A stretch of DNA of 64,000 bases from Epiperipatus broadwayi (lineage: Eukaryota; Animalia; Onychophora), in contig JAQFVV010000006.1 in the NCBI GenBank assembly GCA_028023455.1, forward strand, positions 8,246,001 to 8,310,000, in the 5' to 3' direction. A model generated the notes under the pieces. That model made no database searches. It was not told the DNA's origin and saw only the letters and a program-made list of their open reading frames with translations. Position numbers and translations under genes: made by a program. Shown here one piece after another: positions 54,501 to 62,220 of this stretch; the first letter of the stretch is position 1; every line of letters begins with the position of its first letter.

Positions 54501-56829
54501 TATATACATCAAATACAGCTCCAGTTACATTTCAACCATGTCTTATGATCATTTTCAAAATCCATTCCTATCTCCAATTACTTTCATTTCAATTGAAAGT
54601 AAAGGAATGTGGAGAAAGTAATTGACCTTGAAAACAACTATAATATATGGCTGAAATGTAGGTGAAGCTGTATGTTGATATATACATATCAATGTGAGAA
54701 AATTTTGAATTACACAGCAAAACAAATATTTAAAAAACAAGCATGTAAAAAATAATTATATAAGCTTGCAAAATATATATATATATAATGTTTTTACATT
54801 TTTTTAAGAAGTGAAATGCTAATTAGAATCCCAATAAATATATTCACTTTTTTACTGTTTTTTATAATTTTAGTGATTCGGTTATTAAAAATTACCATGA
54901 CCATAATTTACCATATCATATAAATTTAAATTATTTAAAAGTTTTCTATAAAATAACCAACATTTTATTCAGTGATATTTATATTTTTAAAATATGATTT
55001 ATTATTAATTCCATTTCTAGAAATAGTTCAGTGAAATAAAAATTGTTTTTTTTTTTTTTTAATTAGAAAAGTGGCAAGTATATGTCTAAGTTGATGTTAC
55101 TTCTATATTTCTTTTTTTTTTTTATTGCTATCCAAAATTCTAGAAAATGTTTTATGATTTTTTTCTATTTTGTAAGATACATCTGATGACTCTTTTTTTT
55201 CTTTTCCCAATTAAAATACATATTTTATTAAATGTATTAAAAAGGTGTTGTGAGAAGTTACAACAGAATTCCTTATTAATTGTGATGTTACCTAATGTGT
55301 ACGATATTTTCTGTATCTGAAACTAGAATATTTTAAGCCAATAAACATCACATGACAAATATTATGACAAATGATAATACTTGATCATTGTTGCTGGTAA
55401 ATTCCAATTGTTTTTCATTCTTCTAACTTTGTTACTGATATATGTGCCACATTGAATATTTATACATGTCTGAAGATGCAATTTTCATAATAGCTTTCGT
55501 TTGTATGATGACGTTAGTGATAAAATATTCTATGTTCCATAAAATTTATCATACCATAACAAACAAGCTGAAAAAATGTGTTCATTAAAAAAATTTAAAC
55601 ATTTTTGAAGTTTTTAAATTTATTCAAAAATTGTGAGTTTTGATATACAAGTCCTTTTAAAATAATCACTTTAAAACAAAATTGAAACAGTCAATTAAAT
55701 ATAAATTAAAAAATGTATTTATTGCATCTAACGAGGCTTTCATTCATTAGTGGAAACTTATCAAGAACTTTCTGTTTATAAAATCACATGTAATGTGATG
55801 CACTGTGGCTTCTCCTTTTTCGAACTAAGAAATCTCTCAGCCACATGCCTAGAGAAACCTGTTAACCACCTTCCCTTCCCTTTCCATTCCCCACCCTAAG
55901 TTTTTTCCCTAATCTTTATTATCATGTTCTATCCCATTTCCACAACATAATCTTTGTCAACTCTATAGGCTATATATCTAAATCTCCCTTATCTTATCTT
56001 TTCCCAAACCCAGCATAAAAACCAAGAACCCCACTTTCTGTCTAATCACTTTGTTTACATTTATTCTCCCACAATTTCATTATTTGTACCTTTCTGCTTG
56101 TAGTCATTTACATTCAATTAACAGATGCCTAATATTTTCTAAGCCTTCCTTACATGACCTGCTGACTAACTCACCCATATTTTTTCCATTTATGTGTATA
56201 TTCCCTTTTACTAAAGATCCTGTTCAAATTAAACAGTAAATTACTTTCCTTGTTGTTATCATAAATTAATTCGCACAATATTCTGTTTACTTCTATATAT
56301 ATTTATATTTAAACTCTTTTTACTCACCATACTAGTTCTCCATCTCTCCAACTCCTTATTTTTTATTAATGTATCTATTCTTCTATCCTATTCCTTGCCA
56401 CTATAACATTCTGACCAAATAATCCATAGCAACTCCACCCAAGGAAAACTATCTATATCACATTACAATAAATATAATAAAATAATAATTGTATTCCTAA
56501 GTTTAAATTAATCTGCATAAAACCGTATTAAAATGACATATGATAGATCTTACTGAGCGCTTATTATGCAATCTATTTTGTAAAATGGAGAATATTTTTA
56601 TTACTTTATTTTTAAACCAAGACTCACTGACGAAAACATGTATTTAAAGTAAGGGGATGGGAAGTATTTTTTAACAAATATTTATCTCGTAGTATTATTG
56701 AAAAATTATAACTAAAAGGAAAATTATACCTTTCTAAAAGCATTTGAACAATTTATGCATTCACCCATATGCATAAATGCACAATCATAAACTTTACATA
56801 TCAACAGCATAGGAGTACATGACTTGAAT

Positions 56830-57160: not shown

Positions 57161-57701
57161 TATAAGCAATTGCCTACATGAACTACTGATAAATATTTAG
57201 TAGTTTTTATTTTATTTTAATAAAAAATAATTTCACTTTCTGCAGAATATATTTGAGATAATTTAAGGACATAATTCAATTCTGTATATTGTAAATTATT
57301 ATTAAAAATATAATTATTAAAACGTTACTAATTCTGAAATTACCAATTAGTTGTTTTTAAAATGTCTGGTTTGTAGGAATTCTCAGTAGTTTTCCTTTTC
57401 CACAAAGACATTATTTAAAAATAATATCCTTTACAAAAAAAAAAGTTCATAAAAAATAAACTATAAGATTTTTTTTTTTTTTTATTAAGGAAAAAAAAAT
57501 GCAGGTGACTGATCACCCACTACATAATGTAAATACATTTGTTTAAAAGGAATCTTTAGATCATACTACAGTCAATAACCCTAGTCTTCTCCATTGATTC
57601 ATAAGAGTCTTTGAATTGCCAAGTTCTTTAATTCACAGATCCTTAAAACTTCATCTATGTTGCCATGTCTTTGTATAAACCGCATTTATGGAATTCATAC
57701 T

Positions 57702-58682
57702 TTAATCCGTTTCTGAATTTCTATTGCTTTCCTGTTCGGAGTTTTCTTCAAAATTTTCCTCTTGTGAGCTTATTTCTTCATCATCTGTGATTTCTTCTGT
57801 TTCATCAGTACACACAGGACTAGTACTAATTTGTTGCTGCATTTCCTTTGGATAGCCATCTACTTCCTCGCTTCCAGAACTGTCACTATGAGCCTCATCG
57901 CTCCATTGCTCTTCTACATTATCAAGTTCTTCGACTGGATTATCAGACTTTTCTACGATACCCTGCACTACTTCACCTTGCCTGCTTCCAGACCTGTCAC
58001 TACAAGCCTCATCATTCCATTGCTCTTCTATGTTATTGATTTTTTCCTCTGGATTATCTGCCTCTTCTGAAATTATCTGCCCTACTTCACTGTTGCTACA
58101 TACATGCCCCTTCCAAAAAAGACATGCCCCTTTAGATTCAACAATACATTTGAAGATCATGGGATGAGCTAAAATATCATGTTCCATTACCTCTGAGTCA
58201 TTGACTATCTGACCTTCTGATTCAGTTTCCATCTCATCCCCTGACTCCTGTTGAGCAAACTTCTTCTGTCTTCTTTTCCTTTTTCTCTTTCTCCTTGAGA
58301 GACCCTCAGTTTTCTTTTCTTGCTCACCACACAGCTCGATGTTTGAGCCCACAACACTATGCTCATCAGTTTGTGAGCCAGAGCCATTCTTATTTTTCCT
58401 CTTGAAACTTGCACCTTGTGTCATTTTACCCATTTGAGTTGAACCATTCTCACTTAGTTCTGTATCACTGAACATGTTAGCTTCTTTTAATTGACCTATT
58501 TCTTCTAATGTGCCTTCAGATTCTTCAGATTGTATTGATTCGGAGTTGGTCAGTTCTGCCTGTGCTGATTGTTTCTTTATCTCTTTGGCTGTATCTCTAG
58601 CTTGACCTGCATTTGTCCCATCTTCAAATCTACTGTGCAAGGTTTCTTGATTTTCCTTATAATGTAGCTTATTTGTTTTCAC
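57702..58682 (-). CDS. Acidic low-complexity C-terminal part of ORF1p (frameshifted), with NLS-like RRKRKRKRRQKK and a 38-aa duplication
   Basis: Open 326 codons immediately after the knuckle ORF in the +1 frame; 114-nt repeat at 57871 and 57985. Confidence 0.65.
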   Translation of the reverse strand: MKTNKLHYKENQETLHSRFEDGTNAGQARDTAKEIKKQSAQAELTNSESIQSEESEGTLEEIGQLKEANMFSDTELSENGSTQMGKMTQGASFKRKNKNGSGSQTDEHSVVGSNIELCGEQEKKTEGLSRRKRKRKRRQKKFAQQESGDEMETESEGQIVNDSEVMEHDILAHPMIFKCIVESKGACLFWKGHVCSNSEVGQIISEEADNPEEKINNIEEQWNDEACSDRSGSRQGEVVQGIVEKSDNPVEELDNVEEQWSDEAHSDSSGSEEVDGYPKEMQQQISTSPVCTDETEEITDDEEISSQEENFEENSEQESNRNSETD

Positions 58683-58683
58683 T

Positions 58684-59802
58684 TTATCTTTTAAATGAGA
58701 TTCTTGTGCTCAGTTCTAATTGTTGATTTATAAGTGAAGGATTGCTTGATGTTATTGTACATTTGTGGAATCCACTATAGCTTTCCCCACATTCTGTGCA
58801 TACTCTTTTTGGACAGGCCCTAATTAAATGGCCAGTGTCTCCACATCCATAACACTGTGGTTGAATTCCTCGAATTACTATGTATATTGGGCTTTTATTC
58901 TGCTCAAGAATAGATGGTATATCCAGTGGACTGATACCTTTAGTCAGCCTCATTGTAAATATTGCGTTATTGGATGGCAGCTGAATCCCTGCTCTTCTTT
59001 CCATTAGGAAAGTGAACCATTCAATAGAGCCAAACTGTACTAATAGTCCCTGCAATTCATCTTTTCCAAATGCCACATGACAATTCCGCACCATACCTGT
59101 TATCAATCTTGGTCTTTCCAGGTCAATTTTCACTAAATATTTTCCATCTAGAAACATTTGAGATCTTTTGAATCTTTCTTTGGCTAAAGTGTTCTCAAAT
59201 TCTAGTGTGACATATTTTTTGTTAGGGTGATAGTAGACCCTTCTTATTGAATCAATGATATTTAAGTCCTTGATTAAGACAAATAGCTCATTTATTGGAA
59301 ATATGAAAAGTTCACATTTTTTATTCGTTGTGCTCAATGTTAAAGTATACTGATTCCGGAAGCTAAGAAAGGAATTAAACAATTTCTGAGGAATTCTATT
59401 ATTAAATTCATCATTGACTGATTGAAAGTCTTCTGGAATTAAATTATTTCTATCCTGATTAGAGTTGTTTGTACTTGACTCAACATTATGATATATTAAG
59501 CCATTCTCAAATTTATTCTCATGGGAGATGCCAGCATGTCTAGTTTTCCCATACTTTGCATTGTTCAGATTGTTTTCATGACCTCTGACCACTAGCTCTA
59601 GCTTTGTCTCAAGGGCCATAAGCCCCTGCTCCATTTGAAAGCCATTGGCATATGGGGTTTTGAAACCTTGCCATTTGGAAGTCTTAGTTTCCTTTTTTAA
59701 CTTTTTTGCAAACGTTGGAAGGGTTAGTTCTGCATTATTGCTCTCACCAGCAGGTTCAACTGGATACTTCTGGGCTTCTGTAACTAACCCTAACCCTAAC
59801 CC
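58684..59802 (-). CDS. Non-LTR ORF1p (gag-like): RRM-like region plus CCHC zinc knuckle
   Basis: CYGCGDTGHLIRAC (CX2CX4HX4C, 58813-58854), followed by CTECGESYSGFHKC. Frame is open to the insertion boundary; first internal ATG at 59634. Confidence 0.8.
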   Translation of the reverse strand, partial: GLGLGLVTEAQKYPVEPAGESNNAELTLPTFAKKLKKETKTSKWQGFKTPYANGFQMEQGLMALETKLELVVRGHENNLNNAKYGKTRHAGISHENKFENGLIYHNVESSTNNSNQDRNNLIPEDFQSVNDEFNNRIPQKLFNSFLSFRNQYTLTLSTTNKKCELFIFPINELFVLIKDLNIIDSIRRVYYHPNKKYVTLEFENTLAKERFKRSQMFLDGKYLVKIDLERPRLITGMVRNCHVAFGKDELQGLLVQFGSIEWFTFLMERRAGIQLPSNNAIFTMRLTKGISPLDIPSILEQNKSPIYIVIRGIQPQCYGCGDTGHLIRACPKRVCTECGESYSGFHKCTITSSNPSLINQQLELSTRISFKR

Positions 59803-59805
59803 TAA
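59784..59805 (-). repeat. Telomere-type (TTAGGG)3.7
   Basis: CTAACCCTAACCCTAACCCTAA; the outermost TTA overlaps the TSD. Confidence 0.9.
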
Positions 59806-60030
59806 ACTATAAGATTTTAACATGCCATTTCTACTAACACAACAAAAGTTGAATTTTCTATTAGATAACGGGCAATATACAGGCATAGCACAAATTATTT
59901 TTCCAGTAAATTTAAAGAGAACAATAAAGCATTTTATATTAGTCGCTCTGTGCACTAGACATGCAAAAGTGAGTAAAACATATAAATAAATATTAGTTAA
60001 ATATTTCAATTCATCTACTGCACTCAAAAT

Positions 60031-62220
60031 CAGAGCCTCTCAAATTAGGGGGTGTGAAACTTGTTAAAGTGATCCAAAAAAATAAATTTCAACTTGTTAA
60101 ATTAGAAGTAGCATTTATTTTTATAAAACCATCAAAACACCACGATCCCTATTTCATATGCTTACACATGGTATTAATAAGAGTAACAAACTCTCCATAC
60201 AGTAGTGCCATCCTGCATCCATTGATTACGAAGGCTTGCACTTGGTGGCACTACTGTATGGACATTTTGGTACTCTTACATTTACTTTTATAGATAGATA
60301 TATTTGTAAATTTTAAAGTGAAAATTTATACACAACCTAAGAATCACTCTGTTTATTTTACAATTCATATACAACAGTGCTATAAACACTGGGAAATATC
60401 CTTATGCAGTTTATTAGTTTCATCTTTATAACAAATGTCACTGGTACTAGTACGTTTGATAGTTCTTCATTAAAAATTTAATCCTGAGATGGGTAAATGG
60501 CTAATAAAAACAAAATGTATTTGTAGAAGCCAGTCAAAGGTGACAAACAGATCAAAGAATCTGAGTTGCAGATGGCATATAACTTAAGGAGTCAATTAGT
60601 AATACAAATGACATTAATTTAAAAGTTTTTGTCAAGATACCTGTATAATGCAGTCTTGTAGAAATTTCTCTGATACAACTAAAAGAAGTCACATATTTGA
60701 AAAAAATAGACACACTTTTATAGAAAATGAGTTAGAATGGCAAAAGTGCATTAGGATTTACATCGATGGAGCTGCAGTCACAATTAGCAGGATTCCAGGA
60801 TTTATAGAAGAATTAAAATAGGATTGTACTGAATGCAAGACACATTCTATGCATTATCCACAGAGAAAACTTAGTAGTTTAACAGATGGAATTAGTAAAG
60901 AGTTATCAGAAGTTTCCACAATAATTAATTATAATAAATAACAGAGGGAATAATCCTTCAGTCATAAACTGTTTGCAAATATTTTTAAATTTACAAATGC
61001 CTACTCATCAGCAAGAGTTTAAAAAACACAAATGAATCATTTGTGCTTAGAGCTTATTTTTATATAAACCAATCACAGATTATCATGCTTAAGTCAGGGC
61101 TTGAACCGGTTGTATATTACTAATACGAGACTCTCAAATTTTATGCCAAGAGATCGACTGCACACACAAATTTTTTTTCTAACAGAAGTAAGATGATTAT
61201 ATTTTAAAATTAATTATCAATTTTTCTTCTTGGTAAAAAAATCTCATTAGCATCTCATTTTTCTGACCCATATTTAATATATTTGCTTTCTTATCTGGTG
61301 GATTATTTTTTTTTGAAAAAAATCAAAAGAACCCCTTTCTCTGCAAGGTAAGTGTACCAATATATTAACCCCAAATATAAAATTGCACACATTTCAAAAT
61401 AAAGTTGTGGGATGGTTAAAAAGTTTTAGAGATAATAATATACAAATGTATGCTCCTCTCTATAAATTTCTTGAGGAAAATAATGTTTTATTATCAGCAA
61501 AAAATAAAAGACTAAAAATAAACCATGTCACAAATTCAGCTTCTTATTAAAAATTTTCCTAACTTCGGTGAAAATAAAGAATACGGTGGGATAAGAATGT
61601 CATCTATTCCAACTGTACAATTTAAGAACATCCCATGGTGATCCAAGAAGAACTAATTGACTTGAAAGCAGATCCAACTCTTGAATCGAAATTTTTTAAT
61701 ATGGGTTTGTCAGAATTTTGGATCCGGTGACAAAAAGAATATCCTTTAAAGGCCAACATACCCATAAATATTCTGGTTCCATTCACATCTACATATCTTT
61801 CCACAACTGCATTTTCATTGCTATTACTAATTAAAAATAAGCATAGATCCTATTTATTAATGGAATCATTGAAAAAACATCTTCACCAATAGCAATTTTT
61901 TTGTGGAACAATAATTCAAACACATCCATCACAATAAAGCATTATTAAAATATTTTTTCTTGTATTCTTTTTTTTTCTTCTAATTATTATTAAAGAGGTT
62001 TGTATTTCATATTTTATAATATTTGTAATATTTCTAACTCTTTAAATATTTTGTACTGAAATGAAAATAGAAATAAAAAAATTATTTAAATAAACTAGAT
62101 ATAAATACAATAAAAATACACAATAACTGCACGTCCTTATTGAGAATTTTTTCTTTTGGGGGACAGAATGTTTCTGATATTCAAGGTGAGTCTTTATATC
62201 AATTAGTTTGAGAAGCACTG
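60031..62220 (+). mobile_element. hAT Buster/Charlie-type transposon, degenerate and internally deleted
   Basis: TIRs CAGAGCCTCTCAAATTA / TAGTTTGAGAAGCACTG. 8-bp flanks CTCAAAAT / CTTTAAAT. Remnants ENELEWQKCIRIYIDGAA, IIHRE and EELIDLKAD...FW...KEYP...PFTSTYL..AFS. Confidence 0.85.
60181..60275. mobile_element. Miniature family A foldback nested in the hAT
   Basis: CTCTCCATACAGTAGTGCCA / TGGCACTACTGTATGGA match family A 3' arm (cf. 30345-30362). Confidence 0.7.

Follow-up and report, generated by a model that had tools for sequence, protein, structure and literature searches.

A perfect TTAGGG tract at the 5' junction of a truncated retroposon in Epiperipatus broadwayi, possibly left by telomerase on an integration intermediate

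How can telomeric repeats come to lie at the 5' junction of a retroposon that is inserted at an internal chromosomal site? The question is raised by a locus within the 64,000-nt stretch of Epiperipatus broadwayi DNA analysed here (the window), for which a preliminary description, made from the letters alone, had reported TTAGGG repeats at the 5' junction of a TSD-flanked retro-insertion. Our analysis confirms this arrangement. Read in the sense orientation, which is that of the minus strand, the locus consists of flanking DNA, a 16-bp TSD, a tract of TTAGGG repeats, a 5'-truncated retroposon, AATAAA with an A tail and finally the second copy of the TSD. The individual features are as follows:

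57457-57472, minus strand: 3' TSD copy, sense AAAATCTTATAGTTTA, an exact repeat of the 5' copy
57473-59785, minus strand: 5'-truncated poly(A) retroposon, about 2.3 kb of about 3.16 kb, beginning AGTTACAGAAG, as mapped to the reference copy L002
57481-57486, minus strand: AATAAA, followed by 8-12 A directly before the 3' TSD
57702-58682, minus strand: acidic C-terminal part of the family ORF, continuous with the CCHC part in L002
58684-59784, minus strand: remnant of the family ORF with a putative CCHC zinc knuckle (LINE ORF1 / ZCCHC3-like), from a sub-threshold Pfam match and embedding neighbours
59784-59805, minus strand: perfect telomeric G-strand tract TTAGGGTTAGGGTTAGGGTTAG, TTAGGG three times plus TTAG, 22 nt, exact at 22/22 positions
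59803-59818, minus strand: 5' TSD copy, sense AAAATCTTATAGTTTA, a 16/16 exact match to the 3' copy

In the sense orientation the 5' flank reads ...catgtt before the TSD, and tttttt follows the 3' TSD copy. The tract overlaps its neighbours on both sides: TTA (59803-59805) forms the final 3 nt of the 5' TSD copy and is in register with the telomeric repeats, while AG (59784-59785) is common to the tract and to the first retained bases of the element. This leaves 17 nt of unambiguous filler (59786-59802) that has no source in the target or in the parent element. The sharing of TTA had been noted in the preliminary description, to which the sharing of AG is now added. A TSD of 16 bp had also been given there; the exact repeat over 16 positions stands, but the A's with which it starts are indistinguishable from the tail, so its length is properly 12-16 bp (12 bp if these A's are given to the tail). 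Telomeric repeats are present only on the 5' side of the element, inside the TSD pair, and the site is internal, 8.3 Mb inside the large contig C6, with both outer flanks non-telomeric. This is not the arrangement of a telomere-specific LINE of the TRAS/SART type. The insertion carries the features of L1-type target-primed integration, namely AATAAA and poly(A), a TSD within the range of about 7-20 bp, a TTTT/A-like nick and 5' truncation, and the first nick reconstructed on the plus strand (TTTT/AACATG) is an L1-type TTTT/AA site.

The carrier belongs to a large family in the host assembly, which comprises 5.6 Gb and is AT-rich (about 30% GC). Two first-look searches yielded 1162 and 889 candidates, of which about 40 were scored in each, with identities of 89-100%. 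Full-length copies of about 3.16 kb start with (T)AGAGGGCGTGGCGCACGAA and contain one long ORF, and family copies end with AATAAA and poly(A), flanked by TSDs of 7-17 bp that begin with runs of A. As reference we used L002, a single natural copy, and no built sequence of a consensus, ancestral or repaired kind; the ORF of L002 encodes 917 aa and is whole in this copy only among the 28 sampled. In the window copy a stop at 58684-58686 splits the CCHC part from the acidic part. The knuckle is matched by Pfam zf-CCHC with an E value of 0.002, which is below the Pfam cut-off, and the nearest language-model neighbours of the ORF fall in CCHC and RBD_ZCCHC3 clusters (scores 0.93-0.94), which we take to be LINE-ORF1-like proteins. 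A word search found no protein relatives of the carrier ORF, and no RT or endonuclease was found in the 3.16-kb L002-type element. Judged from its sequence organisation, the family is a candidate ORF1-only LINE derivative that would be mobilised in trans. It is similar to the HAL1-type half-LINEs in having a CCHC ORF1-like protein only, with no RT or endonuclease, in carrying AATAAA, poly(A) and TSDs of 7-17 bp, and in numbering hundreds of copies or more. However, the resemblance is one of organisation only, there being no sequence relationship between HAL1-type elements and the carrier.

Homology between the window copy and L002 begins at reference position 854 of 3160, about a quarter of the way into the single ORF, and the two are 99.2% identical over 2298 aligned nt. 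This identity and the perfect TSDs mark the window copy as a young insertion. All other copies that are readable at this point (27/27) continue upstream as non-telomeric coding sequence, with ...ACCATGACAATTAAAAGCCAAAGCTTGGAAAAAAATAGGGAAAAAGTT upstream of ACAGAAGCCC, and the window copy is therefore truncated at position 854. The parent encodes ...KNREKV... at the position of the GLGLGL that appears in the window, a spurious peptide that arises because a listed 447-aa ORF extends across the tract and on into the flanking DNA. The preliminary description had allowed that GLGLGL might be native to the ORF; this was rejected on the evidence of the 27 non-telomeric copies, and the ORF starts further upstream. 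At least nine truncated copies with clear TSDs (L021, L028, L045, L049, L058, L059, L061, L063 and L069) have 0-1 extra nt between the TSD and the element. Against this family pattern the window copy, with 17 nt of filler, stands out, and its filler is telomeric.

The tract is real, non-random and specific to the window copy. The 22-mer has no other match in the window even at 3 mismatches, and no second tract of two or more units was found across about 320 kb, comprising the window and the fetched loci. An origin by chance or as an assembly artefact would require a sequence that none of 100 shuffles matches, even at 3 mismatches, and the tract is embedded in a self-consistent TSD-flanked insertion deep within a large contig; we consider such an origin extremely improbable. 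That the repeats came with the insertion had been argued earlier from their location inside the TSD pair, and this agrees with their being peculiar to this copy and absent from the 27 others. No empty-site haplotig or paralogue was found in the assembly, in which the 5' flank is single-copy over its first 122 bp; we infer from the position of the tract inside the TSD pair, and from this only, that the ancestral site was free of the repeats.

The comparison of 5' junctions proposed in the preliminary description gives the same answer at the scale of the assembly. A search of the 5.6 Gb with one mismatch allowed gave a single occurrence of the tract-element junction, as did a relaxed pattern that accepts a junction anywhere within 30 nt, and no donor or sibling copies carrying it were found in the assembly. 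Telomeric repeats were absent from the 30 nt upstream of every one of the 24 exact full-length 5'-end motifs. These counts bear on a 5' transduction, in which a truncated donor lying inside a telomeric or interstitial TTAGGG array would have been transcribed from the upstream repeats and the chimeric RNA retrotransposed. Mobilisation in trans could indeed copy a promoterless, truncated element read through from outside, and telomeric regions are poorly assembled, so that a donor may reside in an unassembled telomere. However, the junction has no second copy in the assembly, and none of the 24 exact 5'-end motifs is closely preceded by telomeric repeats. The telomeric-array donor, one of the three options offered in the preliminary description, is accordingly disfavoured, and we regard it as very unlikely. 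A spliced telomeric exon was also considered and rejected, since the junction lacks GT-AG-compatible boundaries.

The repeats match the telomere motif of the host. The assembly contains 3974 sixty-base windows of TTAGGG (ten units) compared with 24 of TTAGG (twelve units), and no such windows occur in the reversed-sequence control. Because long TTAGGG arrays far outnumber those of TTAGG, the assignment of TTAGGG as the host motif, which the preliminary description had expected in place of arthropod TTAGG if the repeat is telomeric, is supported. One array was inspected, at 5.4-9 kb in contig C27, counted from the contig start. Its plus strand is the C-rich one, as a left end would have it; innermost it is pure TTAGGG, and nearer the contig end this gives way to TTAGG and then to (GAA)n. 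It serves as evidence for the motif, but it is not a clean terminal telomere.

Given a host that uses TTAGGG, the reading that we favour, albeit tentatively, is that telomerase added the tract as a patch to an intermediate of retroposon integration. Of the options put forward earlier, the one in which telomerase lengthens the exposed 3' end of the target fits every feature of the locus and is the best reading of it. The anatomy of the insertion, the uniqueness of the tract, the register at both of its ends and the host motif are observed directly; the agent is a different matter, and telomerase would be preferred to another templated route on the following grounds. Second-strand cleavage frees a 3'-OH on one strand of the target, and it is this strand that runs on without interruption into the G-rich repeats, which is the polarity to be expected if the freed end was extended. 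The tract takes up the hexamer register where the target end TTA leaves it, continuing GGGTTAG, a fit that has a chance of 1/64. In-register ends characterise about 75% of the telomerase-attributed ITS insertions at breaks; a register of 3 nt or more occurs at no fewer than 33% of ITS loci, where less than 2% would be expected, and in-register ends were the signature on which Nergadze et al. based the involvement of telomerase (PMC2246262). The tract departs from the host hexamer at none of its 22 positions, and such exactness also marks the telomerase-attributed ITSs (PMC2246262). The tract stops at the ...GGGTTAG permutation, the point at which human telomerase ends each repeat and releases its product most readily (PMC12920920). 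By analogy with the human enzyme this end point would support telomerase, although the support is weakened by the 2-nt ambiguity of AG. In addition, telomere repeats are known to patch I-SceI-induced breaks in cells (PMC5110952).

The same polarity separates telomerase acting as an enzyme from its RNA acting as a template. Rodent ITS loci that contain retrotranscribed segments of telomerase RNA exist (PMC2246262), and an RT that switched onto the template region of this RNA might in principle leave telomeric sequence behind. However, a C-rich template gives G-rich cDNA, so that the sense strand would read CTAACCC; moreover, a template of about 11 nt is too short to yield 17-22 nt in one pass, and the tract is not flanked by any non-template telomerase RNA sequence. 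We have rejected this possibility, to which we attach the lowest probability of all. In the case of telomerase acting as an enzyme, the length of 17-22 nt means that repeat-addition cycling is needed.

The sequence of events under the telomerase reading may be envisaged as follows. An L1-like endonuclease/RT acting in trans would carry out a single target-primed reverse transcription of the ORF1-only poly(A) retroposon. The process would begin with a nick in the plus strand at TTTT/AA, from which cDNA synthesis would be primed on the poly(A) tail and would halt about 850 nt before the 5' end of the element. A second nick 16 nt away would then turn the sense target strand into a 16-nt 3' overhang ending ...GTTTA-3'. 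The telomerase template could align on the TTA-3' end of this overhang and the enzyme could add GGGTTAG, GGTTAG and GGTTAG, a total of 19 nt in three template passes, with release of the product at the usual ...TTAG end. Annealing of the terminal AG to the 3' end of the truncated cDNA would prime second-strand synthesis and allow the insertion to be completed. It is possible, although we hold this more loosely than the patch itself, that telomerase competes for the 3' overhang exposed by the endonuclease, in which case the locus would represent a germline fossil of aborted chromosome healing that was rescued by cDNA annealing. Targeted pattern searches of the assembly found no second telomere-capped copy of the family.

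The polarity, the TTA and AG microhomologies and the perfect repeats would be predicted equally, as far as the letters go, by a template switch onto TERRA or the telomeric G-strand. Here the RT would leave the element RNA at ...AG and jump, through a 2-nt CT/AG pairing, onto TERRA (UUAGGG)n or single-stranded G-strand DNA; after about 20 nt had been copied, the ...CCCTAA-3' end of the cDNA would anneal to the TTA-3' of the overhang, giving a chimera of the U6-L1 type. A G-rich template places TTAGGG in the sense strand, as observed, and short homologies at the two joints are what one would expect if an RT jumps between templates and the 5' end is joined through microhomology. Chimeric retrocopies that L1 makes by switching templates, with all parts enclosed by a single TSD pair, are well established, and Buzdin et al. 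reportedly described them in 2002. On the other hand, two premature exits are needed, the first from the element RNA and the second from TERRA after only about 20 nt and before any subtelomeric sequence is reached, the known chimeras usually carry a whole small RNA, and no telomeric repeat at the 5' junction of a retro-insertion is described in the open-access literature that was searched. None of these points is decisive. The preliminary description had proposed a template switch to telomerase RNA or to TERRA, and of these the second survives, having the right polarity, as a live rival that we consider rather unlikely, whereas the first fails on polarity and length.

Two further explanations dissociate the repeats from the joining of the cDNA by telomerase or RT. 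In the first, a longer or full-length copy would have been inserted, and repair of a later break at its 5' junction would have cost the element its first 850 nt or so, perhaps together with some bases of the TSD, and added a telomeric patch of the type described by Nergadze et al. Among mammalian loci with ITS insertions, about 50% also show a deletion (PMC2246262, Table 1), and the TTTTTT that follows the 3' TSD copy is compatible with a TSD that was once longer. Nevertheless, the left end of the break must coincide with the TSD boundary or fall a few nt inside it, the retained TSD, at up to 16 bp, already approaches the upper limit of the family range, and the copy is young, as judged by its identity to L002, its perfect TSDs and its perfect repeats. 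A single event suffices to account for the locus. This two-step history seems improbable to us. The second explanation, to which we would assign a still lower likelihood, is that a fragment of extrachromosomal telomeric DNA, double- or single-stranded, was captured as filler during end-joining at the 5' junction. Such capture is one of the two original proposals for the origin of ITSs (PMC2246262), and filler DNA is common at end-joining junctions. However, a blunt capture predicts neither the register with the target nor the overlap with the element, and the other truncated copies of the family are without filler.

Several known systems can be compared with this locus. The short ITSs attributed to telomerase action at breaks (Nergadze et al. 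2004, 2007; PMC2246262) likewise consist of a few exact TTAGGG hexamers at an internal site, and their insertion may bring added sequence or a target duplication (PMC2246262). In contrast to these, the break in the present case is a staggered cut made by a retroposon endonuclease, if the proposed mechanism is correct, and the patch joins a truncated cDNA rather than the other chromosomal end, so that tract and retroposon lie within one TSD pair. Breaks induced by I-SceI (Onozawa et al. 2014, reviewed in PMC5110952) can similarly acquire templated insertions of (TTAGGG)n at a site cut by an enzyme, although these are experimental events in human cells that are not coupled to retro-insertion. 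We found no description of a telomeric tract inside a TSD at the 5' junction of a retro-insertion in the open-access literature searched, which is not proof of novelty. The U6-L1-type chimeras share with the window copy a foreign sequence fused in sense to a 5'-truncated poly(A) insert, a single TSD pair and microhomology, but their 5' partner is a whole small RNA, whereas here it is only about 20 nt of telomeric repeat. To our knowledge, TERRA has not been reported as the partner in a template-switch chimera.

Telomerase repeats beside the 5'-truncated end of a retroelement are also a feature of elements at chromosome ends. Morrish et al. are said to have found in 2007 that endonuclease-independent L1 (ENi-L1) insertion at chromosome ends is followed by telomerase addition. 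The endonuclease-deficient Penelope-like elements known as Athena occur at chromosome ends with addition by telomerase to their truncated 5' end, as described in PMC3846280. These insertions are primed by the chromosome end, are terminal and lack a TSD, and it is the cDNA that telomerase extends, so that the repeats are C-rich in the sense orientation. The window insertion, in contrast, has a TSD, occupies an internal site and is G-rich in sense, as would follow from extension of the target strand. A scenario of the Athena or ENi-L1 kind was rejected on these three grounds.

The 5'-end joining is the least understood step of LINE-type target-primed reverse transcription. The event described here is a variant of known phenomena, namely the patching of breaks by telomere repeats and the formation of chimeras, and it is a singleton, represented by one locus and constituting no new system. 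If a telomerase patch is the true explanation, the target sense strand must have been a free 3' overhang before second-strand synthesis, and the locus would be naturally occurring evidence that the second strand is cut before second-strand synthesis is primed and that host end-processing enzymes can reach the overhang. The scars of break repair represented by ITSs and the breaks induced by retrotransposons, which have been treated in separate literatures, would then become linked, with the cuts of retroposon endonucleases being one natural source of short interstitial telomeric scars. With a single locus, and with a TERRA switch that is equally good in sequence terms, the value of the observation is that of a lead for wider study.

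A minor observation concerns the position of the truncation. The 3160 nt of the parent contain four TAGGG pentamers, one of which ends 4 nt upstream of the first retained base, a proximity with a post hoc probability of about 0.01. Annealing to this parental TAGGG, or a switch guided by its homology, was rejected, the window copy being without the AAAA that would separate GGG from AG. At the other three TAGGG sites of the family no telomere-capped copies were found with exact-match patterns, which are of limited sensitivity. Because the truncation point lies so near to a TAGGG, which is a post hoc coincidence, one might speculate that base pairing between the template of a telomerase RNP and UAGGG of the element RNA brought the RT to a halt, and that the RNP then acted on the target end close by.

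In full-length copies of the retroposon family, 3-11 variable extra nucleotides frequently separate the TSD from the canonical 5' end, at the following loci:

L003, L007, L012, L013, L016, L024, L025 and L026: 5' junctions of full-length copies with extra nucleotides

These nucleotides may stem from donor transcripts with heterogeneous start sites, or may have been added at the capped ends of RNAs. Truncated copies of the family, by contrast, show no such extra nucleotides (0-1) at the 5' junction. In the insertion, comparison of window positions 59790-59802 with element positions 845-855 of the reference copy, L002, places the truncation point 4 nt to the downstream side of a TAGGG pentamer. 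The window copy no longer has this pentamer in the parental context. Only four TAGGG pentamers are present in the whole 3.16-kb element, and the probability of such closeness is about 0.01, calculated post hoc.

Telomeric repeats elsewhere in the assembly form an array on contig C27:

G000:C27:5435-9091: telomeric array, comprising loci L032-L043

On its inner side this array is pure TTAGGG; towards the contig start it gives way first to a mixture of TTAGGG and TTAGG, next to TTAGG and finally to (GAA)n. It could represent a subtelomere with variant repeats or degraded sequence at the contig end. TTAGG runs are also present on two small contigs, C11510 and C11640.

Approximately eight of the 28 sampled retroposon copies (L004, L005, L006, L011, L017 and L027-L029) belong to a composite subfamily that carries a nested, sense-oriented LINE ORF2 3' end ~185 bp upstream of the anchor, as exemplified by one copy:

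L004:1-1322: composite copy, with the LINE ORF2 3' end in the same sense as the element

The nested ORF extends over at least 394 amino acids and matches the Pfam zf-RVT family (E 5.5e-5), and the ORF2 fragment is terminated by an (ACATC)n tail. Since the 5' motif of the retroposon family is found on the same contigs, 2.9-3.6 kb further upstream, the composite itself has been amplified. Copies L012 and L029 have a common 3' flank (TTTTTTTCATACATTCACAATGTGC...) and are therefore either segmental duplicates or insertions within another repeat.

On the minus strand of the window (55810-56450), ~1 kb from the insertion on its downstream side, a decayed 3' end of the CR1/L2-like LINE that the composite copies carry was recognised by eye; read against the LINE of those copies, it includes the RT C-terminus with a zinc motif. 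The upstream side contains a further repeat:

Window 60121-60278: palindromic, very abundant repeat, ~300 bp upstream of the insertion in the element sense

This sequence matches many loci on both strands at 69-94% identity (1362 first-look candidates) and may represent a palindromic hammerhead family.
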